A stretch of DNA of 64,000 nucleotides. It comes from Bugula neritina (lineage: Eukaryota; Animalia; Bryozoa). Every line of letters begins with the position of its first letter. The first letter of the stretch is position 1. Both the position numbers and the translations under genes were made by a program. Below the pieces are notes generated by a model. The model was not told where the DNA came from and did not search any database. It worked only from the letters and a program-made list of their open reading frames with translations. The DNA is taken from assembly GCA_964035545.1 (NCBI GenBank), contig OZ037770.1, positions 4,620,662 to 4,684,661 of the forward strand, in the 5' to 3' direction. This document shows positions 6,916 to 33,900 of the stretch, piece by piece.

Positions 6916-6928
6916 ATGGCAACAGCTG
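6916..6928 (+). CDS. First coding exon part (MATA)
   Basis: gccATGGCAACAGCTG|gtgagt; phase 1 fits the next exon; acceptor at 6851-6852. Confidence 0.6.
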
Positions 6929-9900
6929 GTGAGTGAGTTTAAATACTCTTTTATTCACATATTTCTTGGAAAATAGAAATATATAAACTCTGAAGATATG
7001 TTGATGTTGTGCCACCAGAATTTAATATAAATCTATAAAACTATTTTATTATCATGCACTACTCTCTATAGTACTGTTTTATGTCACCAATTATCGTATT
7101 GCTTTGAGAATAGTAGAATAGATAAAACTATGCAAGCATTTGGGTTAGGGTTGTCTAATCTCAACACAATAAACACTGAACTATAAACTATACATAAAGT
7201 GATTATTTAGAAAGAATATAAAGCTATGCAATAAAATATATGTTACGTTAGTCATTGTCATAATTACTGAAATCCACCACAATATATGACAGGTGTCAGA
7301 ACGACATACATCACCTGCTAGCACTGTGTAATAATCACACTGCCACTGTATGATGTTACAGAGAAGATGAAAATTTGGTTCAGACATTCTGGACAGCCTC
7401 CTGTAGACTGGTCAGATGTACTGTGTGCTGATACCAAGTCATATACTACTGCTGAGGTGAAACGTGAAGTTGGGAGTTATCATATCACAGATCTGAAAGT
7501 GGAAGGGGAAATTCCAAGTAACATTGGAGAGATTGCTGGTAGAGCCCTGTGTCTATATGTTTTTAAACTGAGTGACGGAGCAAGTCTAGACAAGTGAGTG
7601 TCTATTAAAATAGCTGTGGAAATGATAAATGAATTCAGTTGTGTTATTTATTAAATGATAACGGATAATAGATGCTGAAGTTAAAGCATCTTTTTGCTCA
7701 TAATATATTCATACAATATAATATATATCAATATAGTAATATGTGCAACATTAAGCTTATAGTTGTAGAAACTAAGAAATGTAAAACTGCCTCTACTGCT
7801 ACTTCATAGTATTGATTAAATCATGTTTTATGTATATATAGCTAAAAGCTGGAGTAATGTACAGTTCATAATATATTATACAAAAGACTATGTTATGTCA
7901 TCAACTGCAAATTTACAATCTTAAACATTAGTTAATATATTAATTTACAGAGCATTGTAGAGTGAGGCCTCATGTACTATAAACTAACAGCTAACCTTCC
8001 TCTCCTCACCTACAACATAATATAACTGAAACTCTTTGGTGTTTTTTGCAACAATATATCTGTTTCCTGCATCTTTTATGTTGAATACACAAGTAGTCTG
8101 ATATAATGGTATATATTATTTTGATATATGACACACTTTATATCATGTTAAAAAACCTAAATATGCATATTTTTTGAAGTTATCTAATAGCTTGTCCTAA
8201 CGTGTAAATAATACAGTTTAATGGCATGCCATTGTATATCCTTATATCACAGAACTTTTCATAATCAATAATAAAACAGCCATCTGTAGTTTACTGGCAA
8301 TCATGGTAATAATTGAATCTTTCTTAGCTTCTTGCATCAATCACTTTGATTATCCATTACTCGAATGAATTTATTTTCTGCATTTTTTACCTGGTTGACT
8401 GTGCTTAGCAATATTATATGTACAGTGTCTATTTTTATGACACAGTAGACTACATATATCATACACTTTATATTACAGTCTGTGTCAGCTGACTCAGTTA
8501 GAGAAACTAGACATAGGAGAGAATCCTCTCAACACAGTACCTGAAGTTGTTTCATCACTCACATCACTTAAAAAGTTGAATATGAAGAGATGTAAATTAT
8601 CTACTTTACCTGAGAGGTTTGTGTGTTGCACTATTTCTTCTGTCTTAAACATTCAATATTTAACATATTTAATGCTTATTAAGTAGTGTTATGCAATGTC
8701 ATCATGTATTGCAAACATATGTTGAAAAACCTAAATATGCATTTCTGAAGTTATTTAATAGCTTGTCCTAACGTAGAAATAATACCGTTTAATGGTATGC
8801 CATTGTATATATCCTTGTATATCACAGAATTTTTTATAATTAATTAATAATTAATAATAAAACAGCCATCTGCAGTTTACTGGCAATCATAGCAATAATT
8901 GAATCTGTCTTAGCTTCTTGCATCAATCACTTCGACTATCCATTACTGCAATGAATTTGTTTTCTGCATTTTTCCCTGGTTGACAGCGCCTTAAGCAATA
9001 TAGTCTATACAGTGTATATCATTATCACACAGTAGACTACATATATCTTACCCTTTATGATTATTGCAGTCTATGTCAGCTGACTCAGTTAGAGAAACTA
9101 GACATAAGAGATAATCCTCTCAACACAGTACCTGAAGTTGTGTCATCACTCACATCACTTCAGGAGTTGGATTTGGAGAGCTGTGAATTATCTAATCTAC
9201 CTGAGAGGTTTGTGGAGTTTTTTAATATTTCAAACATTCAATAATTCACATTTTGATATAATGCTTACCAAGTATTGTTGGTTAGTATACCATTATGTAC
9301 CATTAAAAGGGTAAAGCTATAGATTGTAATTTGCTTGAGATTATATTGTATTATGGTTTCTCGTAACTTGCAAATGAACATGTTTTATTCATTTGGCATT
9401 ACATACTCTAATGGTATAAACCTTCGTTTACAAATAATATAGCATCCACTCGTAATTTACTAGTATCTATTTCCCATTAAATGCTTATTAGCTTTCTGTA
9501 TTTTACTTTGAATATACCTTGTCGGAATAAATTTGTATATAATATTATCCTGAACGAGTTGATTACATATATCATGTACTTTTTATTACAGTCTATGTCA
9601 GCTGACTCAGCTAGAGAAACTAAACATAGGATTGAATTCTCTCAACACAGTACCAGAAGTTGTGTCATCATTCACATCACTTAAAGAGTTGCATATGATG
9701 GGCTGTAAAATATCTAATCTACCTGAGAGGTTTGTTCGTCACAATACTCTTTCTGTTTCAAAAAGTCAATCACTCACATCTTTACATGCTTGTCAATTAT
9801 TGCTAGAGTATATAATCCTACATTGTTATATTCAACGGCCTTTCGATTTTTTTCTAGTAGTTTTTCACATCCTGTGAATAACCCAGTTTCATGGCATGAG

Positions 9901-12900
9901 ATTGTATGTTATTATGCCACAAGAACTTTTTGTAATTTATGACAAAACAGCCATCTATAGTTTACTGGCAATCATGTGTTGTGCGAAGCACAATATTTAT
10001 GTGGGCTTTCTAGTGAGCAATCAGCATTTAGTCACAAGCAATTCACTGGTCATCTCGTTTTATAAACTTTATTATAAACTATAAATATGGCGTAAAAATC
10101 TCTATAAGTATTATCACAATGCTACTTTACATCACGGCAAGTATACGCTAACTAACTAATAAATTGTTCTGCTTGGCTTCATCCAATAGTTGCCAATCAC
10201 TCTCTGAACCACGCCCTATTACACCGCCCCCCCCAACAGGAAGCATGCCTTCCTGATATGCACCCATAACAAAAAAAAATATAAAACAATTTATTACATA
10301 AAAAAAACCAAAAAAAAATATAAGATCTGAACATCACGTAAGGTGGACATCTCCAAAAGAGTTTACACACTATTGAGCAAATTTATGTATTGGCACAAGA
10401 AAAATATAATGATAAAAGAAAACAGAATAATACAATCACATATACGGAGATCGTGAAGCAAGGAGATTAGAGACGGCCAGAGGAGGGGAGAACGGAGAGA
10501 GAGAGATCGTCACCATCTGCAGGTGCGCATAGTCAGAGAAGTGAAGAGGGGGGATACTGCTATCATCAGTCTTGGTCGCCCCGTTTGAGGAGGGCCACCG
10601 AAGCTTTGAGAGTCTTCATCTCGGAGGCGGCTGCGGCAACTCTGGGGGTTAACCGTTGAATCTCAGCTTCTAAGTCATACATACGGAGCTCGACTTCTTT
10701 TATATTGCGAGCTGTGGGAGCCTGCCGTTTTGGGGAGGAGGGATGCCAGCAGCGTTTTTGAAGAGGGTTGTATAGAAGTGGGAGTGGGGGAACGTCATTT
10801 CCGAGGTATCTCGACTCTGTGGAGTAGGAGTCGAGGTAGGGTGGAGGGACGAGGTATAGTCTGTGCTGGAGGAGAGTGAGGTGACTTGGTAGGTTTCTTG
10901 TGTCTAGGGGGTCTTGGGCACGGTCCATGAGTGATGATGCGAGGGGAGGGGAATCCTTGTTTGAGTCGTTCAAAGCGGGGGAGATCCTTAATGAAAGGCT
11001 TGATCAGATTGAGAAAGGTGGGGAAGTTGTACTGGTCAACATCATACAGATGTCCCACATGGCAGTCCATAGTGCGCTGATGTTTGAGGATGTAGTCCCT
11101 GTGGTAACTACATTCACCACAGGGACAGAGAGTAGTTAGGAAGTGTTGCGGTACGTGGACGCGCAAACGGCGATGGGTGGAGAAGTGCTGCTGACACAGC
11201 CTGCAGGTGGTGCATTCGTCATGGCCGCGGTGTAGTTGAATCTGTTTTTCTGTGTCTGGTGCGACCCAGCTATGTTGTTGAAGTAGCACGTCTGGTAGGG
11301 ATGTAGGAGGTGTCTCACCGTTCCAGGCCAGTTCTAATGGTGGCATGTCTCCGTAGTTAGGAGAGCGAGTGGCGTCTAAAAGAGCAGAATTATTGTTAGA
11401 TCGAGTTTGATCTTTACAGCATAATTCTGATGACAATCGACTGTTAATAGTCTGAGAGTCATGCATCTTTTTATACGGCACTCGAGAGACTGTGTCAGAA
11501 CGTGTAAACTGACTGAGAGACATAGTATCAAGCTCCAGATCTAGTAGATCGTCCGCCATTACTATGTCCTCGTCGTCATTCACGTGTGACTCTGTCTCCA
11601 GTAACTGTGATTCAATCAGATCGATTAAATCAGAGTTGACTGAGGTGAGATCTATTTCCATTAGTGGAGTGTTAGATCTAAGCAAGCTTACCTGGGAACT
11701 CGGTATTTATACTCATACTCGACGTTCAAGATTGGATGTGGATGGATTAAAAAGCACGTCTACTCTTGACCGCGTCGGCGTAGGAAAAGGCTGGGCAGAG
11801 TGTTTGTTGTGCGAGACCGGAACTATGTGCCCGGAGAGTGGTAATTCCACTCGCTATTCCGTTTTCGCAAAACTTGGTTTTTCCGTTGTGTTCATAACTC
11901 CCACGCTTTGCTGCCAGTCTTTCCGTACGGCGCCCAGCTGGACTTTCATACCTGCCGCTTGTAATGCGGTCGCGTACAAAGTCTTGGAGATAAGCTGGGG
12001 GTCTTCTAGTACGTTGTCCCCTTTCAAGGAGGGGGGAGATGTACTAGTGGTAGACACCGGGGAAGGTGGTGTAGCTGGTGAGGGAGGTGGTGTAGCTGGT
12101 GAGGGAGGTGGTGTACTCACCAGTGGGTTGTTATTTTCCACTGGTGGTGTTTCCTGCCTCCCGTCAGCCGTTATTCTTTCTTCCCCTCTGTTTTCTCCGG
12201 ATGGAGCCCCTCCCGTGTGGAGTTTTGCACTTCCGGAAGTATACTCATTTCCGGAAGTGGTGGTGGTAGCCCTGGGGTCAGACGGCTTGGTTCTGGAGGC
12301 AGAGGGTGTGGCCCCGTTGGGGGAGGTGGCCTCTCTTGCCTTGCCAAGTCTTCCGTCCGTGGCATGACCCACTCATCATTGGGTTTATGCCGCCGCCGCC
12401 CGCGCATCGTTGTCTGCCTCCTGGGCTCTAACAATGGGGGGCACCCCCGGCCGCACCTGGGCTAGCCCAATAGGGTTTCAAGCGGGCTTCATTCTGGACA
12501 GATATTTGTCCAGACCGCTCCAACTTGTAAGTGTGATTGGGCATCACCTCAACTACCACGTAGAGCTCTACAAACTTAGGCTGTAGTTTAGCCGCCTGTC
12601 CTCGACGCCTACGGTAGTTGATCATCCAAACCCAGTCTCCGGTCTGGTAGAGGGGTGGCTCATCAGCGTCTTCCTGTCACACCTGCCACTGCTTATCCCG
12701 CAGTATTTCGTGTGCGACTTTCAGACGCTCTATCAATTCCCCAGCCTACTCGTGGACAGAGTATTCTGGCTCTGGAATATGATAGGCGAGGTGGTCGGGC
12801 ACTCGTGTCTCACGACCGAGTGTCAAGAGGTTGGGGGTCTCGCCGGTGCTGGTATGTGGCGTGCTGCGGTAGGCCCGCATGACCTGCGGCAACACGAGAT

Positions 12901-15900
12901 TCCACTCCTCCTGGCCTCGGCCGAGTAGTAGACTGCGGAGTGCATGCCCTGCATCCGGTTGTTGCGTTCGACCACTCCGTTACCCTGAGGGTGGTATGGA
13001 GTGGTCCTACTTTGGTTTACTCCCCAGAGGCGACAGAGGTCGCTCATCAGTTGAGACTGGAATTGCGACCCCTGGTCCGAGTGTAGTTGCTCGGGCAACC
13101 CAAAGTAGCAGAATACACGCTGATCTAGTGTGCTGGCCACTGTCGGGGCAGACGCGTCTGGAATAGCCAGTGCGTCTGCCCACCTAGTGAAGTGGCCGGT
13201 CAGCACTAGAATCCAGCTGTTTCCTCTGGGGGTGATGCGCATGGGTCCGACCAAGTCAACAGCTACCACCTGCCAGGGCCTGCCAGCATAGAGCCTTCGC
13301 CGTTCCGCTTCCCTGGGAAGACGGCCATGCTTGCTGGCCTGGCAGACTTCGCATTGCTTGATCCTTAGGCGGACGTCACGCTCCATGTTGGGCCAATACC
13401 ACTGGAGCCTTAGCTTTGTAAGCACCCTCCGAACTCCGGCGTGAGCCTGTCGGTGGGTGTCTCATACTAGCTCTCGGCGCATGGCGGCTGGGCAGATCAC
13501 CCTTTCTCGACCAGGGTGTCCCTGGTCGGCGGCCAAGGTGATGGTCAGCAGACCGTTTGGCCCGATCCGCAGAGAGTCCCAGTCTTGGCCGTACAGCCGT
13601 AATTCGGCGCACCCCTGCCGCAGCTGTTCTTCACTTGGTCGTCGCCCTTCCCGTTTAGCTCGATATATGTCAGCTACCACCCCAGGGAGGTCCTCCTGGA
13701 GTTTCTGCAGCTTTCTGACATTGCGAGCTAAGACAGGGTTGGCGCGGAGGTTGTTGACAGCCTTCGGTGGGTTAGGGCTCCTTGGTCGGAGTTGACCTTG
13801 GTCCCAGTCGTAGCTCACTTCAGGGTGGTCCAGTGTCGCCAACTCGGATCTTGGGGGACCCCCATTCCTTCTCTCGATATGGTGACACTGTTTACACCCC
13901 TCGTCCGACCGCCGACTCAGCCCGTCTGCATTGCCGTGTTTCCTACCGGGTCGATGTTCGATCCGGTATGAAAACTCGGCCAGGACTTCGAGCCATCCGG
14001 CGACTTGACTGGACGGTTCAGCTCTCTTACACAGCCAGATCAAGGAGGCGTGGTCCGTCCGCAAGCGGAACGGCCTACCGTAGAGATAAGGCCGGAAGTG
14101 TTTCACTGACTTGATTACTGCCAGCAACTCCTTGCGAGTGATGCAGTAATTGCGCTCTGGGGGTGAAAGTGATTTGCTGTAATAAGCTGCGACTACTTCA
14201 CGGCCCTCTTGTACTTGCGACAGCACAGCACCAACATTCTGGTCACTGGCGTCTGTGTCAAGGATATACTCCAGAGCGGGGTCTGGGTAGGCCAGAATTG
14301 GAGCCTCTAGCAAACGGCTCTTGAGACTGTCGAATGCCCTTTGTTCGACGGGTATCCACTGCCAGGCCAGCCCCTTTGCGATGAGCCGATTCAACGGCTG
14401 TGCAACTCCCGCAAAGTCTGGTATGTATTATCTGTAATACCCTACCAGCCCCAGGAAAGCCCGGAGTCCGGTCAAATCCTGGGGGTGACCCAGTCGGCCA
14501 CAGCCCGCACCTTATCGGGGTCCGTCGCCACGCCATTACGGCCGACTACGTGCCCCAGGTACTTCACCTCCGGCTGCAAGAGAGCGCATTTGGAAGGTTT
14601 GAGCTTGAGACCGGCACCTCGGAGACGCTCGAAGACCTCCCGCAAATGACTGACATGGGTCGGGAAGTCTGGGGAGATAACAATGACATCATCGAGGTAG
14701 ATCAGCAGTGTCTTCCAATGGAGCCCGCTGAGGACTTGCTCCATCAGCCTCTGGAAGGTAGCAGGAGCAGAAGTTAACCCGAAGGGCAGTACCTTCCACT
14801 TCCACAGCGCGTCTTGGGTGATGAACGCCGCTTTCTCCTGGGCGTCGGGACTGTGGGGAACTTGCCAGTAACCACTCAGCCAATTTAAAGTACTGAAGTA
14901 CTTGCTGCCGGCTAAGGCGTCCAGGGAGAGGTAGGGGAGGTAGAGGGTAGGCGTCCTGTATGGTTACGCTATTAGGTTTGCGGTAATTCACACAGAACCA
15001 CCAACTGCCGTCTTTTTTCCGGACCAGGACGACCGGCGAGCTCTACGCACTATGTGCAGGTTCTATGAGGCCGCGGTCCAGAAGATCCCGGACTTGTCGG
15101 CTGACCTCCCTTTCCTTCTCTGGCCCCAGTCTCCGGATGGGTTGGCGGATAGGCAAAGTCCCGGCAGCTAGCGGTATCTCGTGACGGACGGCTTTAGTTA
15201 AGCCCTCGTCCTGGTCTCCGCTGCTGAACACGTCCCCATACTGGCGCAGCAACTGGGCCATAGCCTGGCGCTCCCTGTTGCCCGCACAGCCTTCACAGGC
15301 TGACTTGTATAGTTCTTGGACGTGTTCCGGGACAGTCCCCCGCCGTGCAGACGGGCGCTCTTGGGGACCCTCCGTCGCTTCGCCCAGCGACGGTCCTATG
15401 TCTCCCTCTTGGACCGTGTGGAAACGGCCCAATAAGGATCCAGACGGTAGTGTCACTGACTCTGAAAAGGGGTTGACGCACTGAACCAAGATCTCCCCCC
15501 GGTCAGTCAGCCGATTCAAGCTGCTGGCGAGTTGGATTCTCTGGTGCGTTTCTTCGACAACCCCTAATCCATAGAGTTGGCGGTCATTCACTCTACAGTG
15601 AATGGTCGCCCGGGAGCGGCCGGGTACCGTACAGTTACGGACCACCTGCACGCCCCCGACCAGGGGGCGATCGAACTTGTCGACACAGGAAAGCTCCCGG
15701 CCTGCCATTAGTATGGCGGACTTATGGAAGTCGATGTGGCACTGGTGTCGCTTCAAGAACGGCGTCCCCAGGATAGCGTCCTCTTCCAGCTGGCTGAGGA
15801 TAATAGTTTCCTAGATGGCCTGGTTGCGGACGCGGCCAGGCAGCTCTACAACACCGTAGAAAGGGATACACGACCCGTCTGCGAGGGTGCCAGGTTCTCC

Positions 15901-18900
15901 GGTGTAGGGAGCTAACCCCTTCCTCACCTGGGCAGGGAGGGCATCGAAGACTCATCTGCTGAGGAGATTCGTGTTGCAACCGGAGTCCAGCAAGAACGTG
16001 ACGGTTTTGCCGGCTACCTTCCCGGGCAGGAAGTAGCTTTCTCCATGCGGCTGCAACCTTACTTCCCCAGCATGCGTAGCCTCGGTCAAACGGCATGGTG
16101 TCTGTTTGGTGGTATGCGGGCGCCGCTTCTTCGGCGGAGGGGTGTTTAATTCCCTTCCGATGTCCCGAGGCACCTCGCCGGCCAGCTCCGTCTCCGGTAG
16201 CTGGCTAAAGCGGTTGGTGAGTGGTAGCACGAACGGCTCCTGTCGCCCGATAGGGCGGGTGGTCCGTCGTGGTATCTGCCATCCCTGGGGTCGCTCTCTC
16301 TTCTGCTTGTGGGGCCTCTTTCTGGGTTGGGGTTCCTGGAGCGGGGAGGTCCTGGCTTGTTGTTGCTCCTATTCCGGGTAGTCTTTCCCGAGGTCTCTCC
16401 CTTTTGTCCTCGGTTAAGGGGGCCGGCATCGGTAAGAGTCTTGGCCATCTGTTTCAGCCTGGCGCTCAGCTGGCCCATCTTCTCTCCGAGTGGTTGGGCT
16501 ATCTCCGCGGTGACCTGCATGCCTTCTGGTTTCCTTGTATGTAACTGCTCGGCCCGGAGATAGTCTTCTCCGATTTGTAGGGCGCTTTCTAGAGTGGTCA
16601 CTCCTTTTGCATGTAGTTGATGGCAAAAACCCACATCTTTTAGGGATTGCATGAAGTCAATGAGAGTAAAGTTTCGTCGGTGTGCTTCTGGCAGGTCACT
16701 GTATGCGCTCGGCGCCAGTCTCTTCACCAAGGCGACGTGGTCGCGGAGCGGAGTATTTTTCGCCTGGCGTAGCACTTGTAGACGAGCTCTGGCTTCCAGA
16801 GCGGGGGTGCCAAAACGGCTCCGTAATGTAGTGAATATTTCCGCCACGCTCCGTCCCTGTCCGAACGGTCTAGCGCGCTCCGTCAATACTTCCCGCAGCT
16901 TGACGAGGGCTATTTGCGGCGGCCATTGAGCGACATTTGCTACTTCGTGGAATTCTTCAATGAATTGCTCTACATCTTCTACACCCGTGAAGTTGGGAGC
17001 GGTCAGTTAATCTCTATACACCTCCTCCATATGTAAGAAATTGGCTGGCTTACCTCCCGGGTGCTTCGTTGTGTGCTCTGTCATATTCTCCGTCTCTTCA
17101 TTGTCTCAGCTAGAATAATCCCACCGCTGCCACCACTGTTGTGCGAAGCACAATATTTATGTGGGCTTTCTAGTGAGCAATCAGCATCTAGTCACAAGCA
17201 ATTCACTGGTAATCTCGTTTATCGTAATCAAACTTTATTATAAACTATAAAATATGGCGTAAAAATCTCTATAAGTATTATCACAATGCTACTTTACATC
17301 ACGGCAAGTATACGCTAACTAACTAATAAATTGTTCTGCTTGGCTTCATCCAATAGTTGCCAATCACTCTCTGATTGGCAGGGGGATACGCGTGAGGCGT
17401 AAACCACGCCCCATTACGCATGTCAATTATTGAAACTTTCTTAGCTTCTTGCCCTAATCACTTTGACCTTTTTTGTTGGGCTCTTTTTTAAGAGCAAACT
17501 ACTTCACATTTCATGAAGCAAATAATTTTCATTAAGCAAACAATTTTGTCCTTTGCTAGTTGTTCTTGCCCCTGCATTTCTCTTCTTTTTTTCTGGGCTT
17601 TTTTTCCTTTGTTTTCTTCTCGGAGCAGGCAGTTTTGTTGCTTCGCTCTGAAATTCTTTCCCTCTTCTAGGGGTACCTGATCTGACACCTATTCTTGGTC
17701 TGTAAACACCTGCAATGGCTGGTAAGGAGTCTGGTGGTCAGAGTTCTCGTACTAGTTCAACCTCGGGGGGGGGGGGGCTCTAATGCATGCACATTATGCA
17801 CAATGTCAACATATAATAAACCCAGTCTTGAGTGCTGTCTCTGTTCGAGATCGACACATACCAACTGTCTACCAGACTGGAAGGACCTAAATCGATCTAT
17901 AGATATCATCAGACTGTTTTCTACATCGGGCTTGAAATGGTATTGCCAGACATGTGAGCCCACGCTCAGTGATTACATCAGCGGTGATGAAATTAAAAAA
18001 TCTCTTGCTCAAAAAGAAACTAAAATGGATTCTGTCCAAAACCTTGTCTGTGAGAATATCAAACTGACCAAATCTGAGACAATCAAGCCCGATAACACAG
18101 AACCCTGGTTTACTGAAATCAAACAAACTGTCGAAAGATTGGAAACCAATGTCTAATCCCAACTGAAAAGAAAAGAGAAGGAAGAGCGTGTTATCATACA
18201 TGGCTTAAAAGAGAATAACAATACCATGGAAGAGATTATAGAAATATGTGATATTCTAAGTTTCAATCATGAGTCTCTGCTAAAATTCTCTAGACTAGGT
18301 AGACGTAACATGAACTTCCCCAACTCTGACAAAATAAGACCAGTTAAAGCTACCTTTAATTCTGAGATGAATAAAAATGATTTTATGTATAGATACAACA
18401 CCTGGGAAAATAAAACATCTACATGTTGTACACCAGACCTATCTCCTGAAGAGCGTGACCGTGACTATAAACTTAGAAAACTGAGGGACGAATTAAAAGC
18501 AACTCACTCAGACAAAATGTTTCAAGTAAGAAATGGCTCTATTTACTCCAAGTCTAAAACATCCGGGTCAGACCGCTGGTCCAAGTTTGCCCATGACTCT
18601 GATACTATTGCTTCAGAATCTCTCCGGGACCCCAGCGAGACTAACACCACAACTGATAAAAACACAGCTGGACATTAGATATATACAAGTCATACTTACC
18701 ACTCTACTGCTAACTAACCTGTCCAACTCAACTATCATGGCAGAACAAAAAGAGTTTAAAGTAATATCTTGGATTTGTAATGGTATCAGGAGTAAAATAC
18801 ATGAACTTTCCATGCCATTATATCAGCAATCGCCAGATATCTTTTGCTAATGTGAAACAAAACTAGATTCATCAGTTTCCGATAATGAGTTAACCAGAGG

Positions 18901-21900
18901 CTACACCCTTTACCGGCGTGATGGAACTGACGGACTAGGACGTGGAGGTGGAGTCCTTATAGGCCTATCCAATAAATGTCCCTTTGTTGTTAGTAGAATC
19001 AATGTCTCACACCCTGGGGAAATCATTGCCCTTGATTTATCAATCTGTGGATACTCTTTCACTATTGCATGCTATTACCGTAGGCCCTGTATAAAACAAG
19101 TAGAAGATATAGTAAATTGGTATTATGATCAAACCAATCCGAACATTGTTATGGTTGGGGATTTTAACCTACCTGACATTGGCTGGAATGATAGTTACAG
19201 GCCTGTACTTAAAACAACAAGAGAAACTAACTTGCATCAATTGTTCGTAGATTTTATAATTTCGAATAATCTTTCTCAGGCTATCAATAAACCTACTCAC
19301 GACAAAGGTAATACGCTTGATCTAGTTGTTACAGATGTAACTACCACTAACCCCCGAGTTGAGTCATTCTGCTCTGACCATTTTATTATCAATTTCAATG
19401 TGTTGGCGGATAATGTTTTAAAAGGACAGCATCTTTAACCAAACCAAAACCATATTGGCAGTTTGAAAAGGCAGACATAACGAACATCACCGTGGACTGT
19501 TACTCCCTACATTGTAAAATCACCTAAGAAATGTAGCGCTGAACAATTATGGCATAATCTCAAATCTGGAATACTTCAGGTAGCACATTCTAATATCCCA
19601 TACAAATTTAGAAAGAAAAAAAATCAGAACTCTAGATATCCCAAGAAACTGAAAGTGAGATCAGAAAAAGAAAACCCCTCCACCTAGCTTGCCTTAACGA
19701 TCGCACCCCGCACAACATTTTAAAACATGCTACCCAGTCCCGGTACTGCAAGAAATTGTGTAACAAGGACTATAATAATTATATAAACAAACACATATGC
19801 AATACATTAGAGCAGGGTGATTCAAAACCTCTTTATCGGTTAATAGCAAGTGAAAAGGGCAGCTCAAATACTGTACGCCAACTAGACAACATCCCCCTAA
19901 CAACAATACTGCTATAGCTGAATCTTTTGCGGACTCCTTTGCTTCTGTGTTTTCTATTGATGATGGTAATATCCCTCCCTGCATTCCACCTCAAACTATA
20001 TCATCTCCTATACAATTTGATCCTCGGGGAGTCCTAACACAGCTCACCAAACTCGATCCACGAAAAGGTGCTGGCCCAGATGAGCTTTCTCCTGCACTTC
20101 TAAAATATCTTGCACATTATATATATGAGCCCCTGACAAAGGTTTTTCAGTACTTTTACGATACATCTCAGACACCACAAGACTGGAAAACAGCAAACAT
20201 TGTACCGATCTTCAAGAAATGAAGTCGTACAGACCCGCTGAATTATAGGCCAATATCACTCACTTCTATCATATCCAAAATCTTCGAGCATATCGTATCA
20301 CATAATAGCAACTGTTTCCTCGAATCAAATGACCTGTTTTACCCACACCAACATGTTTTCAGGACAAATCATGGCTGCGATACTCAGTTGTTGAATACCG
20401 TGAGTGAATTTATAGATTTTTCGACGAAATGATACCGGTTGACCTCGCTGTCTTGGATTTTTCAAAGGCCTTTGACGCTGTGTCGCACCAAAAACTACAG
20501 GTTAAACTGCTAAATATCGGAATAGCTGATAAAACTGTTAAATGGATTTTTTCATGGCTTCAGAGCCGTCTTCTTTCAGTCTGTGTCAACAACGTCAAAT
20601 CGGCCACTAGACATGTGACCTCAGGAGTGCGCCAAGGCAGTGTATTAGGACCATTGTTATCTAGTGTGTACATAAATGACATGCACTCTGCGGTAGCCAA
20701 CAGCAAGCTTAAACTATATGCGGATGATTCCTTGTTGTACAAACCAATCACAACACATGCTGATTCTAGTTTGTTTCAGAATGACTTAGACCATCTTATA
20801 ACTTGGGCAGACAGTTCTCAGATGAAGTTCAATATAAATAAATGTGAGCATATGACAATTCAACGCTCCACTGTAAATCCTCTAGTGTCTCAATACAGCA
20901 TGAATAATGACCTCTTACAATGTGTTGACAAAGTATTATACCTTGGTGTCACGATTGATAATGAACTGTCATTTGATCAACATATAATAAACATTTGCTC
21001 AAAAGCTAATAAATTATTACACATGCTGATGCGCTGTCTAAAAAAGGCTAAAAGTAAAACCAGAGCCATAGCTTATAAAAAAGTCTGTTGCCCTATACTA
21101 GAATTTGTGACTCACACCTGGTCTCCATTTAAATTGAAAAACATCAACATCATAGAAGGTATAAATAGAAAAGCTTTCAGGTGGACATTCTGTAGGAGAA
21201 AACGAGATCATATAACTGAGCTCATGACAAACTCTAATTGGGATAGCCTTGCACAAAGACATGACAATGCAGACCAAAAAATGTACCTTCGTATGCTTTC
21301 TGGTAGTGCTGCTATAGACCAGGACCGGTTCTCCCTTCATCTTGCAGAGTCTCACAATACCAGACATGGTGCTATTAAGGGCAATATCCTTACCAAAACT
21401 CCAAACATTCATATAAACATCGCATCCATAAACTTTTTTAATGATTCTATAGCTGCTTTGCTTAACTGATTATAAGCACTTAACACCGACTCTGCTTTAT
21501 ATCATCTGAAGCTGTGCGGTGTATATTTATTTATTTATTTACTTTTTTTTCTCTCCTGGCAGTAGCTAGCTATTGAGCTTTGAATCAAAGCATAATTAAC
21601 TATATTCTTATCTCGTAGACAAAACGGTTTTCTTCCTTGCTACTGATAATCTAAACAATTGTTCATACACCACTGCATCTCGATAAAAGAGCCCAAGCGC
21701 TCCGAGTGAGATTAATTAGATGAGATGATGAGATGAGATGACCTTCCATTGCTGGAATTATTTTGTTTTCTGCATTTTTTCCTGGCTGATTACGCTTGAG
21801 CAATAGAGTCCATACAGTGTATGTTATTATCACGCAGTAGACTGCACAAATCTTACCCTTTATGATTATTACAGTTTATGTCAGCTGACTCAGTTAGAGA

Positions 21901-24900
21901 AACTAGACATAGGATGGAATCCTCTCAACGCAGTACCAGAAGTTGTGTCATCACTCACATCACTTAAAGAGTTGGATATGTGGAGCTGTAAAATATCTAA
22001 TCTACCTGAGAGGTCTGCTAGTCACAATACTCTTTCTGTTTCAGAAAGTCAATTACTCACATCTTTACATGCTTGTCAATTATTGGTAGAGTATATAATG
22101 TTATGTTTAAATGCCTTACAATATTTTTTAAGTTATCTAGTAGTTTGTCATATCCTGTGAATAACCCAGTTTCATGGTATGCGATTTTATGTTATTATGC
22201 CACAAGACCTTTTTGTAATTTATAACAAACAGCCATCTATAGTTTACTGGCAATCATGTCAATTATTGAATCTTTCTTAGCTTCTTGCCTTAACCACTTT
22301 ACCAGTCCATTGCTGGAATGATTGTGTTTTCTGCACCTTTTACCTGGCTGACTACGCTTAAGAAATATAGTCTATACAGTGTATATTATTATCACGCAGT
22401 ATAGACTACATATATCTCACCCTTTATATTACAGTCTATGTCAGCTGACTCAGTTAGAGAAGCTATGGATAGGATGGAATCCTCTCAACACAGTACCTGA
22501 AGTTGTGTCATCATTCACATCACTTAAAGAGTTGCATATGATGGGCTGTAAAATATCTAATCTACCTGAGAGGTCTGTTAGTCACAATACTCTTTCTGTT
22601 TCAGAAAGTGAACCACTCACATCTTTACATGCAGTGTATATTATTATCACACAGTAGGCTACATATATTATACATTTTTGATTATTTCAGTCTATGTCAG
22701 CTGACTCAGTTAGAGAAACTGTACATAGGATTGAGTCCTCTCAACACAGTACCAAAAGTTGTGTCATCACTCACATCACTTAAGGAGTTGGATCTGAGAA
22801 GGTGTAAATTATCTACTCTACCTGAGAGGTTTGTGGAGTCTTTTATTGTTTCAATCATTCAATATTTCACATTTTGATATAATGCTTACCAAGTATTGCT
22901 AATTAGTATACCATTATGTATCGTTAAAAAGCATAAAGCTATAGATTGTGATTTGCTTGAGATCATATTTTATTAGAGTTTCTTGACACTGGAAAATAAA
23001 CCTGTTATAATCATACGGCATTACATACTCTGATGATATGAACTCTCGTTAACAAAAAATATAGCATCCACTTGTAGTTTACTATTATCCATTTTCCATT
23101 AAATGCTTATTAGCTTTCGGTATTTTACTTTGAATATGCCTTGTCGGAATAAATTTGTTTCTTGGATATTTTACCTGATTGGATATACAAGTAGTATATA
23201 TACAGTATACAATATCATCCTGATAGAGTGGATTACATATATTATGCACTTTATATTACAGTCTATGTCAGCTGACTCAGTTAGAGAAGCTGAACATAGC
23301 AAAGAATCCTCTCAACACAGTACCTGAAGTTGTGTCATCACTCACATTACTTGAAGAGTTGGATATGTCGAGCTGTAAAATATCTACTCTACCTGAGAGG
23401 TTTGTGAGTCACAATACTCTTTCTGTTTCAGAAAGTCACGCACTTACATCTTTATATGCTTGCCAATTATTGCTAGAGTATATAATCCTACATTGTTATG
23501 TTAAAAGGCCTTACGATATTTTTTTAAGTTATCTCGTAGTTTGTCTTAACCTGTGAATAACTCAGTTTCATGGCATGACATTGTGTGTTATTATGCCTCG
23601 GGAACCTTTTGTAATTATTAAACAGCCATCTATAGTTTACTGGCAATCATGTCAATTATTGAATCTTTCTTAGCTTCTTGCCTTAACCACTTTACCAGTC
23701 CATTGCTGGAATGATTGTGTTTTCTGCACCTTTTACCTGGCTGACTACGCTTAAGAAATATAGTCTATACAGTGTATATTATTATCACGCAGTATAGACT
23801 ACATATATCTCACCCTTTATATTACAGTCTATGTCAGCTGACTCAGTTAGAGAAGCTATGGATAGGATGGAATCCTCTCAACACAGTACCTGAAGTTGTG
23901 TCATCATTCACATCACTTAAAGAGTTGCATATGATGGGCTGTAAAATATCTAATCTACCTGAGAGGTCTGTTAGTCACAATACTCTTTCTGTTTCAGAAA
24001 GTGAACCACTCACATCTTTACATGCAGTGTATATTATTATCACACAGTAGGCTACATATATTATACATTTTTGATTATTTCAGTCTATGTCAGCTGACTC
24101 AGTTAGAGAAACTGTACATAGGATTGAGTCCTCTCAACACAGTACCAAAAGTTGTGTCATCACTCACATCACTTAAGGAGTTGGATCTGAGAAGGTGTAA
24201 ATTATCTACTCTACCTGAGAGGTTTGTGGAGTCTTTTATTGTTTCAATCATTCAATATTTCACATTTTGATATAATGCTTACCAAGTATTGCTAATTAGT
24301 ATACCATTATGTATCGTTAAAAAGCATAAAGCTATAGATTGTGATTTGCTTGAGATCATATTTTATTAGAGTTTCTTGACACTGGAAAATAAACCTGTTA
24401 TAATCATACGGCATTACATACTCTGATGATATGAACTCTCGTTAACAAAAAATATAGCATCCACTTGTAGTTTACTATTATCCATTTTCCATTAAATGCT
24501 TATTAGCTTTCGGTATTTTACTTTGAATATGCCTTGTCGGAATAAATTTGTTTCTTGGATATTTTACCTGATTGGATATACAAGTAGTATATATACAGTA
24601 TACAATATCATCCTGATAGAGTGGATTACATATATTATGCACTTTATATTACAGTCTATGTCAGCTGACTCAGTTAGAGAAGCTGAACATAGCAAAGAAT
24701 CCTCTCAACACAGTACCTGAAGTTGTGTCATCACTCACATTACTTGAAGAGTTGGATATGTCGAGCTGTGAAATATCTACTCTACCTGAGAGGTTTGTGA
24801 GTCACAATACTCTTTCTGTTTCAGAAAGTCACGCACTTACATCTTTATATGCTTGCCAATTATTGCTAGAGTATATAATCCTACATTGTTATGTTAAAAG

Positions 24901-27900
24901 GCCTTACGATATTTTTTTAAGTTATCTCGTAGTTTGTCTTAACCTGTGAATAACTCAGTTTCATGGCATGACATTGTGTGTTATTATGCCTCGGGAACCT
25001 TTTGTAATTATTAAACAGCCATCTATAGTTTACTGGCAATCATGTCAATTATCAAATCTTCCTTAGCTTTTTGCCCTAATCGCTTTGACTATCCATTGCT
25101 GGAATTATTGTGTTTTCTGCATTTTTACCTGGCTGACTAAGCTTAAGCAAAATAGTCTATACAGTGTATATTATTATCACACAGTAGACTACATATATCT
25201 TACCCTTTATGATTATACAGTCTATGTCAGCTGACTCAGTTAGAGAAGCTATGCATAGGAAAGACTCCTCTCAACACAGTACCAGAAGTTGTGTCATCAC
25301 TCACATCACTTAAAGAGTTGGATATGGAGAGCTGTAAATTATCTGCTCTACCTGAGAGGTTTGTGGAGTCTTTTATTATTTCAATCATTCAATAATTCAC
25401 ATTTTGATATAATGCTTACCAAGTATTGCTAAATAGTATACCATTATGTACCGTTAAAAAGCATAAAGCTATAAATTGTAATTTGTTTGAGATTATATTG
25501 TATTAGAGTTTCTCAAAAGTTGAAAATAAACATGTATTAATCATTTGGCATTACAGACCCTAATGGTATAAACTTTCTTTACCAAATAAAGTAACACCCA
25601 CTTGTACTTTACTAGTATCTATTTCCTATTAAATGCCTATTAGCTTTCTGTATTTTACCCTGAATACGCCTTGTCGGAATAAATTTGTTTCTTGGAAATT
25701 TTACCTATTGGATATACAAGTAGTATATATACAGTATATAATATTCTCCTGATAAAGTGAATTACATATATTATGTACCTTTTATCACAGTCTATGTCAG
25801 CTGAATCAGTTAGAGAAACTAGAGTTAGGACACAATCCTCTCAACACAGTACCAGAAGTTGTGTCATCACTCACATCACTTAAGGAGTTGGATCTGAGAA
25901 GGTGTAAATTATCTACTCTACCTGAGAGGTTTGTGGAGTCTTTTATTGTTTCAATCATTCAATATTTCACATTTTGATATAATGCTTACCAAGTAGCTAT
26001 TGCTAATTAGTATACCATTATGTATCGTTAAAAAGCATAAAGCTATAGATTGTGATTTGCTTGAGATCATATTTTATTAGAGTTTCTTGACACTGGAAAA
26101 TAAACCTGTTATAATCATACGGCATTACATACTCTGATGATATGAACTCTCGTTAACAAAAAATATAGCATCCACTTGTAGTTTACTATTATCCATTTTC
26201 CATTAAATGCTTATTAGCTTTCGGTATTTTACTTTGAATATGCCTTGTCGGAATAAATTTGTTTCTTGGATATTTTACCTGATTGGATATACAAGTAGTA
26301 TATATACAGTATACAATATCATCCTGATAGAGTGGATTACATATATTATGCACTTTATATTACAGTCTATGTCAGCTGACTCAGTTAGAGAAGCTGAACA
26401 TAGCAAAGAATCCTCTCAACACAGTACCTGAAGTTGTGTCATCACTCACATTACTTGAAGAGTTGGATATGTCGAGCTGTAAAATATCTACTCTACCTGA
26501 GAGGTTTGTGAGTCACAATACTCTTTCTGTTTCAGAAAGTCACGCACTTACATCTTTATATGCTTGCCAATTATTGCTAGAGTATATAATCCTACATTGT
26601 TATGTTAAAAGGCCTTACGATATTTTTTTAAGTTATCTCGTAGTTTGTCTTAACCTGTGAATAACTTAGTTTCATGGCATGACATTGTGTGTTATTATGC
26701 CTCGGGAACCTTTTGTAATTATTAAACAGCCATCTACAGTTTACTGGCAATCATGTCAATTATCAAATCTTCCTTAGCTTCTTGCCCTAATCGCTTTGAC
26801 TATCCATTGCTGGAATTATTGTGTTTTCTGCATTTTTACCTGGCTGACTAAGCTTAAGCAAAATAGTCTATACAGTGTATATTATTATCACACAGTAGAC
26901 TACATATATCTTACCCTTTATGATTATACAGTCTATGTCAGCTGACTCAGTTAGAGAAGCTATGCATAGGAAAGACTCCTCTCAACACAGTACCAGAAGT
27001 TGTGTCATCACTCACATCACTTAAAGAGTTGAATATGGAGAGCTGTAAATTATCTGCTCTACCTGAGAGGTTTGTGGAACACAGTCCTAAGTTATTCAAT
27101 AATTCAACATTTCACATAAATTTATATGCCTACCATTTCTTTCTAAAGTGTATATAACCCATTTCTGCTATGTTGAAAAACTCTAAAATGTTTCTTTTTT
27201 AAATTATCTCGTAGTTTGCCATAACCTTGAAATATCATCAGTAATTTATGGTTGTATAACATTGAATATTATTATGCAGTAAGACCTTTTTGCAATTACA
27301 TGTAATTAACAAACAGCCATCTACAGTTTACTGGCAATCATGTCAATTATCAAATCTTCCTTAGCTTCCTGCCTTAATCACTTTGACTATCCATTGCTGG
27401 AATTATTGTGTTTTCTGCACTTTTTACCTGGCTGACTATGCTTAAGCAATATAGTCTATACAGTGTTCATTATTATCACACAGTAGACTACATATATCTT
27501 ACCCTTTATGATTATACAGTCTATGTCAGCTGACTCAGTTAGAGAAGCTATGCATAGGAAAGACTCCTCTCAACACAGTACCAGAAGTTGTGTCATCACT
27601 CACATCACTTAAAGAGTTGAATATGGAGAGCTGTAAATTATCTGCTCTACCTGAGAGGTTTGTGGAACACAGTCCTAAGTTATTCAATAATTCAACATTT
27701 CACATAAATTTATATGCCTACCATTTCTTTCTAAAGTGTATATAACCCATTTCTGCTATGTTGAAAAACTCTAAAATGTTTCTTTTTTAAATTATCTCGT
27801 AGTTTGCCATAACCTTGAAATATCATCAGTAATTTATGGTTGTATAACATTGAATATTATTATGCAGTAAGACCTTTTTGCAATTACATGTAATTAACAA

Positions 27901-30900
27901 ACAGCCATCTACAGTTTACTGGCAATCATGTCAATTATCAAATCTTCCTTAGCTTCCTGCCTTAATCACTTTGACTATCCATTGCTGGAATTATTGTGTT
28001 TTCTGCACTTTTTACCTGGCTGACTATGCTTAAGCAATATAGTCTATACAGTGTTCATTATTATCACACAGTAGACTACATATATCTTACCCTTTATGAT
28101 TATACAGTCTATGTCAGCTGACTCAGTTAGAGAAACTACACATAAGATTTAATACTCTCAACACAGTACCAGAAGTTGTGTCATCACTCACATCACTTAA
28201 AGAGTTGGATATGTGGAGCTGTAAAATATCTAATCTACCTGAGAGGTCTGCTAGTCACAATACTCTTTCTGTTTCAGAAAGTCAATTACTCACATCTTTA
28301 CATGCTTGTCAATTATTGGTAGAGTATATAATGTTATGTTTAAATGCCTTACAATATTTTTTAAGTTATCTAGTAGTTTGTCATATCCTGTGAATAACCC
28401 AGTTTCATGGTATGCCATTAGTATACCATTATGTATTGTTAAAAAGCATAAAGCTATAGATTGTGATTTGCTTGAGATCATATTTTATTAGAGTTTCTTG
28501 ACACTGGAAAATAACCATGTTTTAATCATTTGGCATTACATACTCTAATGGTATAAACCTTCATTAACAAATAATATAGCACCCACTTGTACTTTACTAG
28601 TATCTATTTCCCATTAAATGCTTATTAGCTTTCTGTATTTTACCCTGAATACGCCTTGTCGGAATAAATTTGTTTCTTGGATATTTTACCTGATTGGATA
28701 TACAAGTAGTATATATATACAGTATATAATATTCTCCTGATAAAGTTTATTACATATATTATGTACCTTTTATTACAGTCTATGTAAGCTGACTCAGTTA
28801 GAGAAACTAGACATAGGATGTAATTCTCTCAACACAGTACCAGAAGTTGTGTCATCACTCATATCACTTAAAGAGTTGAATATGATGAGCTGTGAATTAT
28901 CTACTCTACCTGAGAGGTTTGTGTCATCTTAATGTTTGAAACATTCAATAATTCACATGTTGATATAATGCTTATACCAAGTATTGCTAATTAGTATGTC
29001 ACTATGTATTGTTGAAAAGCATAAAGCTATAAATTAGAATTTCTTTGAGGCTATATTGTATTGGAGTTTCTCAAAACTTGAAAATAAATATGTTTCAGTT
29101 ATCTGGCATTACATTTCCTATTGCTATAAAACCTTCTTCAATAAATACTAAAGCACCCACTTGTAGTTCACTAGAATTTTTTTCACATTAAATGTCTTTT
29201 ACTTTGAATATGCCTTGTCATACTAAATTTGTGTTTTTTTTTGCATGTTATACCTGATTGAAGACACCAGTATAGTATACAGAGTACATACTATTATCCT
29301 GATACAGTAGACTACATATATTACACACTTTATATTACAGTCTGTGCCAGCTGACTCAGTTAGAGAAACTACACATAAGAGACAATCCTCTCAACACAGT
29401 ACCAGAAGTTGTGTCATCACTCGCATCACTTGAAGAGTTGAATATGGGGAGCTGTAGATTATCTACTCTACCTAAGAGGTTTGTGTGCCACAACAAGTTT
29501 TATATATCACTTTTAACATTCAATAACTATTATTTTAAAGCCATATTTCAACACAGTAAATACTGCGTTAGGATGCAAACCTGCAAACCTACATATGAAT
29601 CTCACCGTTTCTGGGGATATTGTCAATTAGCACACTATCTATAGAAGTTTCCTTGACTTCACAAATTATTTTATAGTATTTCAATATCTTTTTTGAAATG
29701 CTCACCATGATAGGTTGACTAGGCTTTTCTTCAGAAATTGTTTTAATAACTCTTTTCATCATATTCCAACTATAGCTACTTCTGTACACAAAATTAGTTT
29801 TTATTATATCATTATAATAACATATTATCTCATTATTTTCAAGTTAGTCAGAAAACCACTTCCTTATATTTTTAATGACATCATGTATGACATACTTGAC
29901 TCAATCAACTGTATTGTGTAAGGCTCATTAGTAACAATGCATGGTGGATTATATGGTATGTTTTACTTAAATAATTCAAGTTTGAGGTACAATTATTTCG
30001 ACATGAAAGATCTGACATTATATTGTAATCCTAAGAGGACAAAACAAATTATTCAATATTGCCACTTCGTTTTTCTTCAGGCTCTGCTTTAGTTGTCTCT
30101 CTCAACTCTTGGTGTAGTAGAAGCCAATTTTTATTCTATTCCTGTTCTCAAATAACTTATGAATATATTTCCTTATATTTAATTTACATTTATTAATTAC
30201 AAATTAACGGGCCTTTAAAAGTGCAACATGTTCCTGCAAGCCGATGACTTTCCAGAGTTGTATTCTCTCATAGTAAAATAATTCACAACTTCTACTTCCT
30301 GTCTAAAGCTATAATACATTTATTAGAATAATTAGTGAGAGGTTGTGGCAGAAGTATTTTATTTTACTTGACATTACTTTAATGCCTTTACGTGGATGTT
30401 TCAGAGCTGTACTGGTGTTCCTATTTGGTGATAAATTGCATGTATTTTGGCATATAAAACAATATTCCTTATAATGAAAACATCCATATAATAGAATACC
30501 AGTGTGAGCAGTTACTCAGTGATCTGAAAAATAGAAAAATATCGCTGTAAGACAGTGTTACATGCATGTAAGTTTTGTTTTGGTGACACTAATTAGTACA
30601 AATGTAACACTCCTTTTACCAAATATACTTATAGCTGTATTTGGCAAATTCTTATAAAAAGTGCCTAAAATTTTGCTTATAGCATTTAATATAATACATA
30701 ATTGTAACCTAGACCTACTTTTTTGTATTATAAAGATAATTCCTAGAATAAAAGTTATTCACTGTATTATTTCAAGGCATTGCATGGAGATAAACTTGTT
30801 ATAGTCACTGCCACTTAGTACTACATTATGTGTAACTATTGTTATGCTATTATTGGATATACAATTTGTCATTATTGTCTCATAAATCAGGAAACTGTTT

Positions 30901-33900
30901 TCTTATATAATTTCTATAATGCCATCACATAGCAACATACTTGACTCAATCAACTGTATTGTGAAAATGTTACACGTAAAAGTAAATTAAAAAAATTCTT
31001 AGTGGATTATATAGTATTTTTGATTTAGGTAATTTAAGTTCTACTTTTAATTATTTTGAAGTAAAAGATCTGCCTTTATATTGTAAACCAAAGAGAACAA
31101 AACAAATTATTCAATATTGCAATTTTGTTTTTTTTACATGCTTTACTTTAGTTGTCTCTCTCCAATTCTCAATGTAAAAGAAGCCAATTTTTATCCTATA
31201 CTTGTTCTCAAGCAGCCTGTTAATATATTGTTGTATTCTTTCGTTGTGAAATAATTCACAACTTCTACTTTCTGTCTAAAAATATAATGCATTTATTAGA
31301 ATACTTAGTGAGAAGTTGTGTCAGAAGTATTTTATTTTACTTGAAATTACTTTAATGCCTTGCGTAGATGTTTCAGAGCTGTACTGTGCTCCTATTTGAT
31401 GATAAATTGCATGTATTATGGCACATAAAACAATATTCCTTATAATTATATCATCCATATAATAGAATACCAGTGTGAGCTGTTACTCAGTGATCAGAAG
31501 TGTCAGAAGTATTTTATTTTCACTTGACATTACTTTAATGCCTTATGCAGATGCCACAAAGCTGTAGCCTACCATGTTCCTTATATTTGCTGATAACTGT
31601 ATCATGGCACATACTAGAAATTTTCTACTCTGTATTATAAAATATTATTCCTTCTAGTAGAATACTTGTGTGAACAGTTACTCAGTGATCTGCCATATAG
31701 AAAAAGATTTCTGTATGATAGTATTCTGTCTAGGGTGTGTTTTTATGACAGTACTTAGTACAAATGTAGCACTTTTCTTACCAAATATACTTATAATTAT
31801 ACTGTTATATATATCTCTATGAAATACTTAAAACTTTATGCATCGTATATATATAATATGATACCCGTACATAATTGTAACTTAGACATACTTGTTTTCT
31901 TTCCGTAATTAATGTACTAATTCAAGGTATTGTATATAAACTTGTTATAGCAACTGCAACTTAGTACTATATTATGTGTAATTATTGTTATATTAATATT
32001 GGGTATCTTTATGAAAACTGTTATATCAATTACCTGTAGTTAGGTTTAATAATAGAAATATTATATATTATTAGAATACAGAGATTAAAGAAGTTACAGA
32101 AACTCAACATTTCAAAAAATAAATTCACCAATCTCCCATCTTCAGTATGTGCATTGAGCAATCTGCACACACTGGATATATACTACAACGAATTTATGGA
32201 ATCTTTGAGCCCTGAGATACTACAGCTAACACATCTTAGGTCCTTCGATACATTTGGTTGCAATGCTCTTACATCTCCTCCACTGGAAGTCTGTAGAAGA
32301 GGACTCGATGCTGTGCGACAATACTACACAGACTTGGCTAAAGGTGCTGGTAGAAATCTTCCATTTGCTACAATAGCGGTGTTGGGGAACACCATGGCAG
32401 GTAAAACCAGTCTAATCAGAACATTACAGAGCACTGACAAGAAAAGAGTTTTAACTGACAGAAGTCCTAATGCAGAGTATGATGAGACCACAAAAGTGTT
32501 CAATGTGGAAGAGGTGGAGGTGGATGGTACAACTCTTCGTCTCATAGATATGGGAGGCCAGGAGGTCTACCATATCACATACCATTTAACACTGAGACAG
32601 AATTGTGTACCAGTAATTGTAGTCAACATGGAGCAGTATGATCAGATTTCGAAAATGTCTACAGACAGAGAGGCTGTGAGAAAGCTGGCTTTTGACTTCA
32701 TGTCTCACCTCTATCTCGCTCATCCAACTCTTGGCCCACCTAAGCTTGTTTTCACACACAAAGATAAGTTTCCGAGTGAAGTTTTCCAACAGCTTCGAAA
32801 AAAGTTTCTTAAAGTTTCTGAGAAGTTATGCAAAAATATTCTTGAAGAAGAGAAAAGTTTAGAAGGTGACTTTGCGCGAATTCAACATTTCACTGCATCA
32901 AACGGAAAAGTGTTCTCCAATGACAACATATATGAAGTTGGGAAATTTGACGAGTACAAGATATTTGAATCGATTAAAAAATCTCTTCTTCAAAGTTGCC
33001 AACACTTTGTGAAGCCACTTCCAAAAGTCTGGGAGGATGTCAACAACAACATTTTGTCATTACAGACCTCACATAACACCTTTGATGAAATATTGGCTAT
33101 GATAAACGAAAAGCAGGATAACATTGAAGCAAAACACTTGGATACGATTATCATGTACATGCATGATTGTGGCAAAGTTCTCTGGTATAAACATATTGAT
33201 GCACTCAGGCCATACATATTTCACAAGATCACGGAAATTACCAAGCTACTCTGTGTCTTATATCATCATGATCCAGACGTTTGGCAAAGTAGAGTTGATC
33301 AGTTCCAACCGTATTTTTCAATGGAAGGAGTGAGGATTGAAAAACAAGAATTTGAAGAGTTTGTGAATTCCTTTAGAATCAATGGCTTGATGATGAAATC
33401 TCTTCTTGTATATTTGATTAGAAAAGAAACTTCGTTCACTGGTGAAAATGATGTGAAAATTGCTGTTTGCTTGCTCAGAACATTCCGTTTATTGTATGGC
33501 CCTTTGAATAATGATTCTGAAGATCCGTACTTCATAGTCCCTCAGTTTGCCAAAGAATCCTACAGCCTCTCCTACACTCCGCCAAAGGAGCTGATGCTTC
33601 ATACCGAAACGCAGTTTAATGGTCTGGCATTACCACAGCATGTCTACCATCAGATGACGGTTGGTTTGCTCGAACTATTTGCTGACGATTCTGCCACAAT
33701 ACAGGTGAAGAGAAATGGAGCAAATGTCTATCAAGATAAAATATATACACAGCTGATACATGACTATGAATCTAAAAGAGTTTTGCTCTACGCGTCATCT
33801 GATGCAAATAATATCACCAAAGCGTGGGAAAAACTCATTTCAGTCAACAACAACATCCTCAGACATGTTATGGAAACTTGGACTGCCAGTCGTCCAGTCA

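Follow-up and report, generated by a model that had tools for sequence, protein, structure and literature searches.

A bryozoan LRR-Roc-COR-caspase gene family with cassette exons and positive selection on its leucine-rich repeat face

What is an animal gene doing when it strings many nearly interchangeable leucine-rich repeat (LRR) exons in front of a GTPase and a caspase? This question is raised by a plus-strand gene in a 64,000-nucleotide stretch of the genome of Bugula neritina (assembly GCA_964035545.1, contig OZ037770.1, positions 4,620,662 to 4,684,661), hereafter the window, to which plain coordinates below refer. We found that the gene belongs to a large bryozoan family encoding LRR-Roc-COR-caspase proteins in a single chain. 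It is a strong candidate for a receptor of a type not yet described in animals, acting in immunity or in self/non-self recognition. An earlier examination of the letters alone, the sequence-only reading, had described an array of 18 interchangeable cassette exons whose variability was said to be confined to ligand-facing residues, and had attributed this to diversifying selection; here we follow up these claims.

The cassette array and the encoded protein

A six-frame scan of the 64-kb window returned exactly 18 cassettes on the plus strand and 0 on the minus strand, from 8479-8616 to 29341-29478. Each is a 138-nt exon with AG before and GT after it, in phase 2-2 and stop-free, and encodes two 23-residue LRRs; 14 of the 18 are distinct at the DNA and protein level alike. 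The count, length, phase, splice sites and lack of stops, as well as the 14 distinct protein sequences, had been stated in the sequence-only reading, whose lists of the variable residues in each repeat also matched the sequence. The array consists of cassettes 1-3 (8479-8616, 9070-9207 and 9592-9729) and cassettes 4-18 (21875 to 29478, starting at 21875, 22435, 22691, 23262, 23828, 24084, 24655, 25221, 25791, 26366, 26932, 27520, 28108, 28779 and 29341), the latter spaced at ~560-590 bp per unit with block duplications inside, and the two parts are divided by one ordinary 12.1-kb intron that carries two retroelements. Four cassettes are exact copies that stem from very recent duplications, and duplicated blocks of 1393 bp (1 mismatch), 588 bp (5 mismatches) and 947 bp (4 mismatches) were present in the HiFi assembly. 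That the array arose as an assembly artefact was rejected on the basis of the 14 distinct cassettes, the HiFi assembly and the occurrence of cassette-type contigs in another DNA run.

The spliced gene model was examined exon by exon for frame, Pfam matches and homology. From a candidate ATG at 6916 to a stop codon ending at 42662, the frame was open across 28 coding exons, giving 1956 residues with every cassette included. The predicted start (6916 to 6928, at the end of exon 6853-6928) has a GCC-ATG-G context, encodes MATA and ends in a phase-1 donor; the N-terminal cap exon (7362 to 7593) is entered in phase 1 and left in phase 2, and thus fits any cassette. Downstream of the array, a large exon of 2003 nt (32075 to 34077), with a phase-2 acceptor in the cassette register, encodes three LRRs with a C-terminal cap, the Roc GTPase and COR. 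Two linker exons follow (34351-34443 and 34645-34793, the second one acidic), and then the caspase exons at 35014-35184 (REGSD, with an S1 Arg), 35961-36183 (MTHGG and LEACSG, with the catalytic His and Cys), 36374-36610 (an acidic inter-subunit linker), 36836-36939 (SKRH, with the second S1 Arg) and 42501 to 42662, which includes the stop codon. No signal peptide was evident in the predicted protein.

The Roc domain was supported by Pfam (30.4 bits against a cut-off of 27), with a P-loop (GNTMAGKTS) and a G3 motif (DMGG), while COR-A gave a weak match (E=6e-4; 20.1 bits, below the cut-off of 35.3); the best named homologues were MFHAS1-like and COR-domain proteins. Peptidase_C14 was supported by Pfam in the caspase exons, which aligned to caspase-3/6/7, CED-3 and caspase-8, and weakly to caspase-1 p10. 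In the alignment MTHGG and LEACSG match SHG and QACRG of solved caspases, the catalytic His-Gly and Cys being kept, and both S1 arginines are kept as well, one in REGSD (exon 35014) and one in KRHP, which corresponds to WRHP of caspase-1 p10 at E=0.16. Judged by its predicted protein, the gene codes for an animal ROCO with an in-frame caspase fusion, and the proposed tie between the two bears up. A prokaryotic gene was rejected given the introns and RNA splicing, and a pseudogene given the intact frame.

Selection on the LRR face and recombination among cassettes

The most variable cassette codons were 11, 13, 14, 34, 36 and 37, and the nucleotide p-distance was 0.39 at these six codons, 0.056 in the framework and 0.083 at four-fold framework sites. 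Variation is therefore concentrated at the concave sites, but it is not confined to them: codons 15, 16, 27, 29, 31, 35, 39, 40 and 42 vary moderately, and among the x-sites (the x positions of the repeat motif) 8 and 9 carry a constant residue in all cassettes, with x-site 32 differing in one. Site tests on the 14 cassettes that are distinct used codon-model code of our own. Model M8 was favoured over M7 (2dL, twice the difference in log likelihood, of 79) and over M8a (2dL 79.5, p ~5e-19), with sites 11, 14 and 36 singled out. To guard against inflation by recombination or multi-base changes, the tests were rerun on half trees and with a multi-hit model; positive selection was retained when each cassette half was placed on its own tree (p=7e-12 and 4e-8) and when double and triple nucleotide changes were permitted (p=4e-13). 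With 12 pre-chosen x-sites given their own synonymous rate, omega was 3.1 (tested against 1, 2dL 7.2, p ~0.007), compared to 0.85 for the rest. A plain Nei-Gojobori count at the x-sites gave a pN/pS of only 1.2-1.3, because multi-base codon differences inflate pS, and likelihood models were used for this reason. The first and second positions of codons 11, 14 and 36 differed at 0.67, well over the aligned intron flanks of the cassettes (p-distance ~0.20-0.26, a value biased low, with a shuffled baseline of 0.34).

Corresponding positions were recovered in other sequences. In 14 cassettes of a 144-nt subfamily the equivalent positions stood out (p=5e-6), and across the large exons of 16 paralogues omega reached 3.3 at the x-sites of the three LRRs, compared with 0.47 for the rest of these LRRs and 0.25 for Roc. 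In an AlphaFold model of the LRR arm from Watersipora (predicted local distance difference test score, pLDDT, 89), positions 3-5 of each LxxLxLxxN lie on the beta-strand, so that the selected positions 5, 7 and 8 are the strand end and the next two residues. These residues form the concave binding face in LRR proteins. Overall, new residues are favoured by selection at the beta-strand and the two positions after it, and binding-face residues outpace neutral DNA in evolution. The diversifying selection proposed earlier was thus recovered by site-wise codon models, with dN/dS raised over the framework, divergence higher than in the intron flanks and the variable sites placed on a structural model.

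The near-invariance of the framework even at silent sites was also borne out as an observation. However, with a silent p-distance of 0.08 against 0.20-0.26 or more in the introns, and with omega near 1, recombinational homogenisation explains it better than purifying selection alone, and we conclude that the likeness of the framework is kept mainly by recombination (omega ~0.85). A pairwise homoplasy index (PHI)-type test for recombination among cassettes gave p=0.0002. Distances between 5' halves and between 3' halves were uncorrelated (rho 0.05), the 3' half tracked its own downstream intron (rho 0.39, p=0.001), and the 30-nt mid-exon tract between the halves was almost constant (p-distance 0.03); in the cassette pairs 4/16, 6/12 and 3/5 the second repeat is common to both members, and the first is not. 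Half-cassettes are swapped across this near-invariant tract, where the breakpoints fall, so that a cassette's two repeats assort independently of each other.

Paralogues were compared by way of coordinate and identity tables and of JGI/ENA contigs from other samples. A distance of 330 kb separates the gene from its nearest paralogue, with which it shares 98.1% identity in a 4.3-kb stretch of Roc-COR and introns but 77-83% over the array. Furthermore, the first 80 letters of a cassette (read by eye) were identical upstream of two genes that are themselves only 88% identical (C6:3800640 and 4095144), which points to exchange between genes. The germline array grows, shrinks and scrambles via unequal crossing-over and conversion. 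The support for interchangeable cassettes thus concerns the germline, by duplication and half-cassette swapping. Dead cassettes were also seen within arrays of a Watersipora locus (L032, 20042-20182) and of one Bugula paralogue (L016, 8-60); one of the two is without a GT donor and one ends after the first repeat.

Transcription, family and known systems

Three presumed RNA runs from two studies were compared with one stretch of the gene, the caspase exons lying outside it. In all three, contigs covered cassettes 15-18 and the large exon with introns empty or almost so; a fourth, DNA-like run covered exons and introns alike. Joints or loose ends were observed from cap exon to cassette, from cassette to cassette (all three runs) and from cassette to large exon, including in run X5 a loose end that matches the 3' end of the cap exon and is located before a cassette. 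The cassettes are thus transcribed, as the proposal of the sequence-only reading requires, and joined to one another, at the level of the family because the contigs come from other alleles and paralogues. The RNA runs contained only 13-27% of sampled large-exon words, and other individuals differ strongly. Arthropod Dscam1 likewise has tandem duplicated, frame-compatible exons, and in Dscam one exon is chosen per cluster. The cassette-to-cassette joins in three RNA runs make an exclusive choice of one in 18 unlikely, and Dscam-type exclusion was rejected at the family level.

The genome contains at least 69 Roc-COR exon matches (69 of 138 candidates were scored), nearly all of them stop-free, together with 798 cassette candidates; a 28-nt mid-exon tract had 338 matches with up to 3 mismatches, compared to 0 for a control. 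A caspase catalytic exon was found downstream on the same strand in 30/30 of the best Roc-COR paralogues. The nearest named homologues belong to the bryozoan Watersipora subatra, in which, as on a marine metagenome scaffold, the cassette is 141 nt long, and it is 144 nt long in other Bugula subfamilies. The 138-, 141- and 144-nt types are all two-repeat, phase 2-2 and upstream of Roc-COR and caspase exons, and from this shared layout we conclude that the design is older than Bugula neritina. A metagenome scan with the cassette profile yielded only unrelated intron-less LRR proteins, and our literature search found no study of a bryozoan ROCO or ROCO-caspase family.

The caspase motif reads EVCSG, ETCSG or HACSG in paralogues and QACAG in Watersipora and locus L053, and loci L044 and L048 carry a caspase of a second type (SHG...HACSG). 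At C6:2607458 and C6:2539429 the Roc-COR exons are 73-77% identical but the caspase exons only 44-47%; caspase identity being out of step with Roc-COR identity, this suggests swapping of effector modules inside the family. Dense 138-type cassettes and caspase exons were also seen at C1:32.79-33.66 Mb, where none of the 69 scored Roc-COR matches falls; these arrays belong either to a more distant Roc-COR subfamily or to LRR-caspase genes without Roc.

Several further features lie in the window. Intron 3 holds a minus-strand Ty3/gypsy-type long terminal repeat (LTR) retrotransposon (9977 to 17400; LTRs ~96% identical, CATG target-site duplication) with integrase and RNase H pieces in separate broken open reading frames (ORFs), and a plus-strand long interspersed nuclear element (LINE; 17460 to 21740) with a PHD finger in ORF1, a reverse-transcriptase remnant and a GATGA-repeat 3' tail. 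An unclassified, DNA-transposon-like element without assigned strand (37224 to 42413) sits in the last caspase intron; its terminal inverted repeats are 1.19 kb long (98%), and its broken ORFs give weak matches to DUF6589 and CXC. At 238-621 (+), a truncated family pseudogene represents the decayed beginning of a paralogous large exon; it matches 32019-32394 at 74% identity and contains stops and frameshifts. The 5' region 5218-5735, 18-bp tandem repeat included, recurs at 61622-62204 (+), where the next family member (Roc-COR exon at C6:4702666) probably has its 5' end. Between two ROCO-caspase genes lies a proline dehydrogenase gene (~47200-53400, minus strand; AKLVRGAYM motif, weak Pfam Pro_dh match), and the remainder includes more decayed LINE-like reverse-transcriptase or ORF fragments (44900-46200 (+) and 59900-60820) and a 1.5-kb TA microsatellite (58361-59879; GC ~10% in that bin).

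The closest parallel in design, already named in the sequence-only reading and found to be real, is with the brown algal LRR-ROCO genes of Ectocarpus and Saccharina. These genes (PMC3341825, PMC11378527) share with the Bugula gene an LRR-Roc-COR core, tandem phase-2 LRR exons, exon shuffling within and between genes, dead cassettes in introns, gene birth and death, and positive selection at concave sites (four in the algae). The algal exon, however, is 72 nt long and encodes one LRR, whereas the Bugula exon is 138 nt long (141-144 in relatives) and encodes two, which makes half-cassette swapping possible. The consulted parts of these papers mention no caspase fusion. For the algae, alternative splicing and inverted cassettes have been reported; the Bugula window has no minus-strand cassette. 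In essence, the Bugula gene works like the brown algal ROCOs yet is not a member by exon unit, and the two designs presumably arose independently, in line with the convergence proposed in the sequence-only reading.

Among other systems, bacterial LRR-AP-GTPase-COR conflict proteins (PMC8195603) have an equal domain order, fast-evolving N-terminal LRRs and a caspase among their C-terminal effectors (TIR and others also occur), but no introns or cassette exons; since the Bugula caspase aligns with animal caspases, its fusion was probably independent of the bacterial one. Amphioxus LRR-caspase fusions (PMC2575513) share the one-chain link of an LRR sensor to a caspase in an animal, proposed as a shortcut from recognition to apoptosis, although no Roc domain is mentioned and their motif is QACXG. 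MFHAS1/MASL1 and invertebrate MFHAS1-like ROCOs (Watersipora XP_067949573.1 and XP_067949566.1; Lingula LRR-Roc-COR-CARD) share LRR-Roc-COR without a kinase; relatives in Lingula and Owenia are 21-22% identical, the Lingula protein having a terminal CARD, and databases give the MFHAS1-like name to the Bugula-type family automatically. In vertebrates, MFHAS1 is a conserved single gene that is not known to carry a caspase. The variable lymphocyte receptors of lampreys and hagfish vary, as the cassettes do, at xLxLxx on the concave face of their LRR modules, but they are surface or secreted proteins whose germline gene is incomplete and is filled somatically through gene-conversion-like copying (PMC13428168). 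Assembly of that type, from flanking non-exonic cassettes, was rejected here, the germline ORF being complete and the cassettes true spliced exons with their own splice sites.

Proposed function and its alternatives

The gene probably encodes a germline-diversified cytosolic sensor of non-self that holds sensor, switch and effector in one chain and triggers its own caspase. The mRNA of this copy would carry most or all 18 cassettes (~39 LRRs), and their concave face would bind a fast-changing non-self ligand in the cytosol. Binding would shift the GTP-dependent state of a Roc-COR dimer, bringing two tethered caspase domains together for proximity activation, and the active caspase would cause cell death or process a defence substrate; one chain would thereby do the job of the sensor, adaptor and caspase of an NLR inflammasome. 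In favour of this proposal, bacterial LRR-AP-GTPase-COR proteins with caspase effectors have been interpreted as counter-invader systems (PMC8195603). Several points weigh against it. The ligand, activation and outcome are proposed by analogy with initiator-caspase and ROCO biology. Caspase activity is uncertain because this gene has EACSG in place of the QACxG pentapeptide and because the loop ahead of the small-subunit Arg is ~two residues short. The splice from Roc-COR to caspase is supported by reading frame, by splice sites and by the RefSeq model from Watersipora rather than by RNA; joints in the RNA contigs, which are short and 90-99% like the window, are not assignable to this copy; and with a framework omega near 1 the synonymous baseline is thin (45 codons, 14 sequences).

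The same receptor might instead be diversified at the RNA level, by combinatorial skipping of frame-neutral cassettes that would yield many LRR arms from one gene. Every cassette being phase 2-2, any subset stays in frame; the cassette donors read GTTTGT or GTCTGY and lack the purine usual at +3; joints in run X3 mapped from cassette 16 to cassette 18 and from cassette 17 to the large exon; and there is a reported precedent in Ectocarpus ROCOs (PMC11378527). However, the contigs behind the X3 joints differ from this allele and may simply show neighbouring cassettes of a paralogue, and the Watersipora RefSeq model joins its intact cassettes in series, so we regard skipping as possible yet rather unlikely. 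It is doubtful, further, that the LRR arm differs among the zooids or cells of one colony, whether through combinatorial skipping of exons or through somatic recombination between invariant tracts in mid-exon; if it did, a lophotrochozoan animal would have an anticipatory repertoire of intracellular receptors coupled directly to a caspase.

Known invertebrate allorecognition proteins such as Hydractinia Alr and those of the Botryllus fuhc locus are mostly surface proteins. A receptor that kills cells where unrelated colonies meet, in place of a pathogen sensor, would suit the built-in caspase, the strong differences among individuals seen in the RNA runs and the colonial habit of bryozoans, which are listed among animals with allo-incompatibility (PMC8195603). 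We nevertheless consider this improbable, as the protein looks cytosolic, and at least 69 genes over several chromosomes fit pathogen sensing better than a single-locus match system. Still less probable is a non-proteolytic, c-FLIP-like scaffold or decoy, in which the LRR arm diversifies and the caspase fold serves only to bind or regulate other caspases: EACSG here and EVCSG, ETCSG and HACSG in paralogues would agree with it, but this copy retains His, Cys and both S1 arginines, and, among readable catalytic exons, His and Cys are kept in six other Bugula-type loci and two outgroup loci (QACAG). Neutral tandem-repeat turnover, in which conversion homogenises the framework and drifting x-sites mimic selection, could draw on the framework omega and on pervasive recombination, both able to inflate site tests, but it is largely refuted and very improbable, given that codons 11, 14 and 36 exceed the intron flanks, that the tests survive half trees, multi-hit models and a free synonymous rate, and that the same structural positions were singled out in two further sequence sets.

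In the literature searched, the molecular description of bryozoan immunity is almost nil. The cassette-ROCO design of brown algae is found here in an animal, with a different exon unit and half-cassette recombination added, and the family offers a natural one-chain system for the study of how a Roc-COR switch controls a protease. At least 69 sensor-GTPase-caspase genes with several hundred hypervariable cassettes are a concrete candidate for parasite detection, symbiont policing or non-kin rejection, and through the ROCO-caspase family the questions of how colonial animals deal with parasites, symbionts and non-kin become testable.

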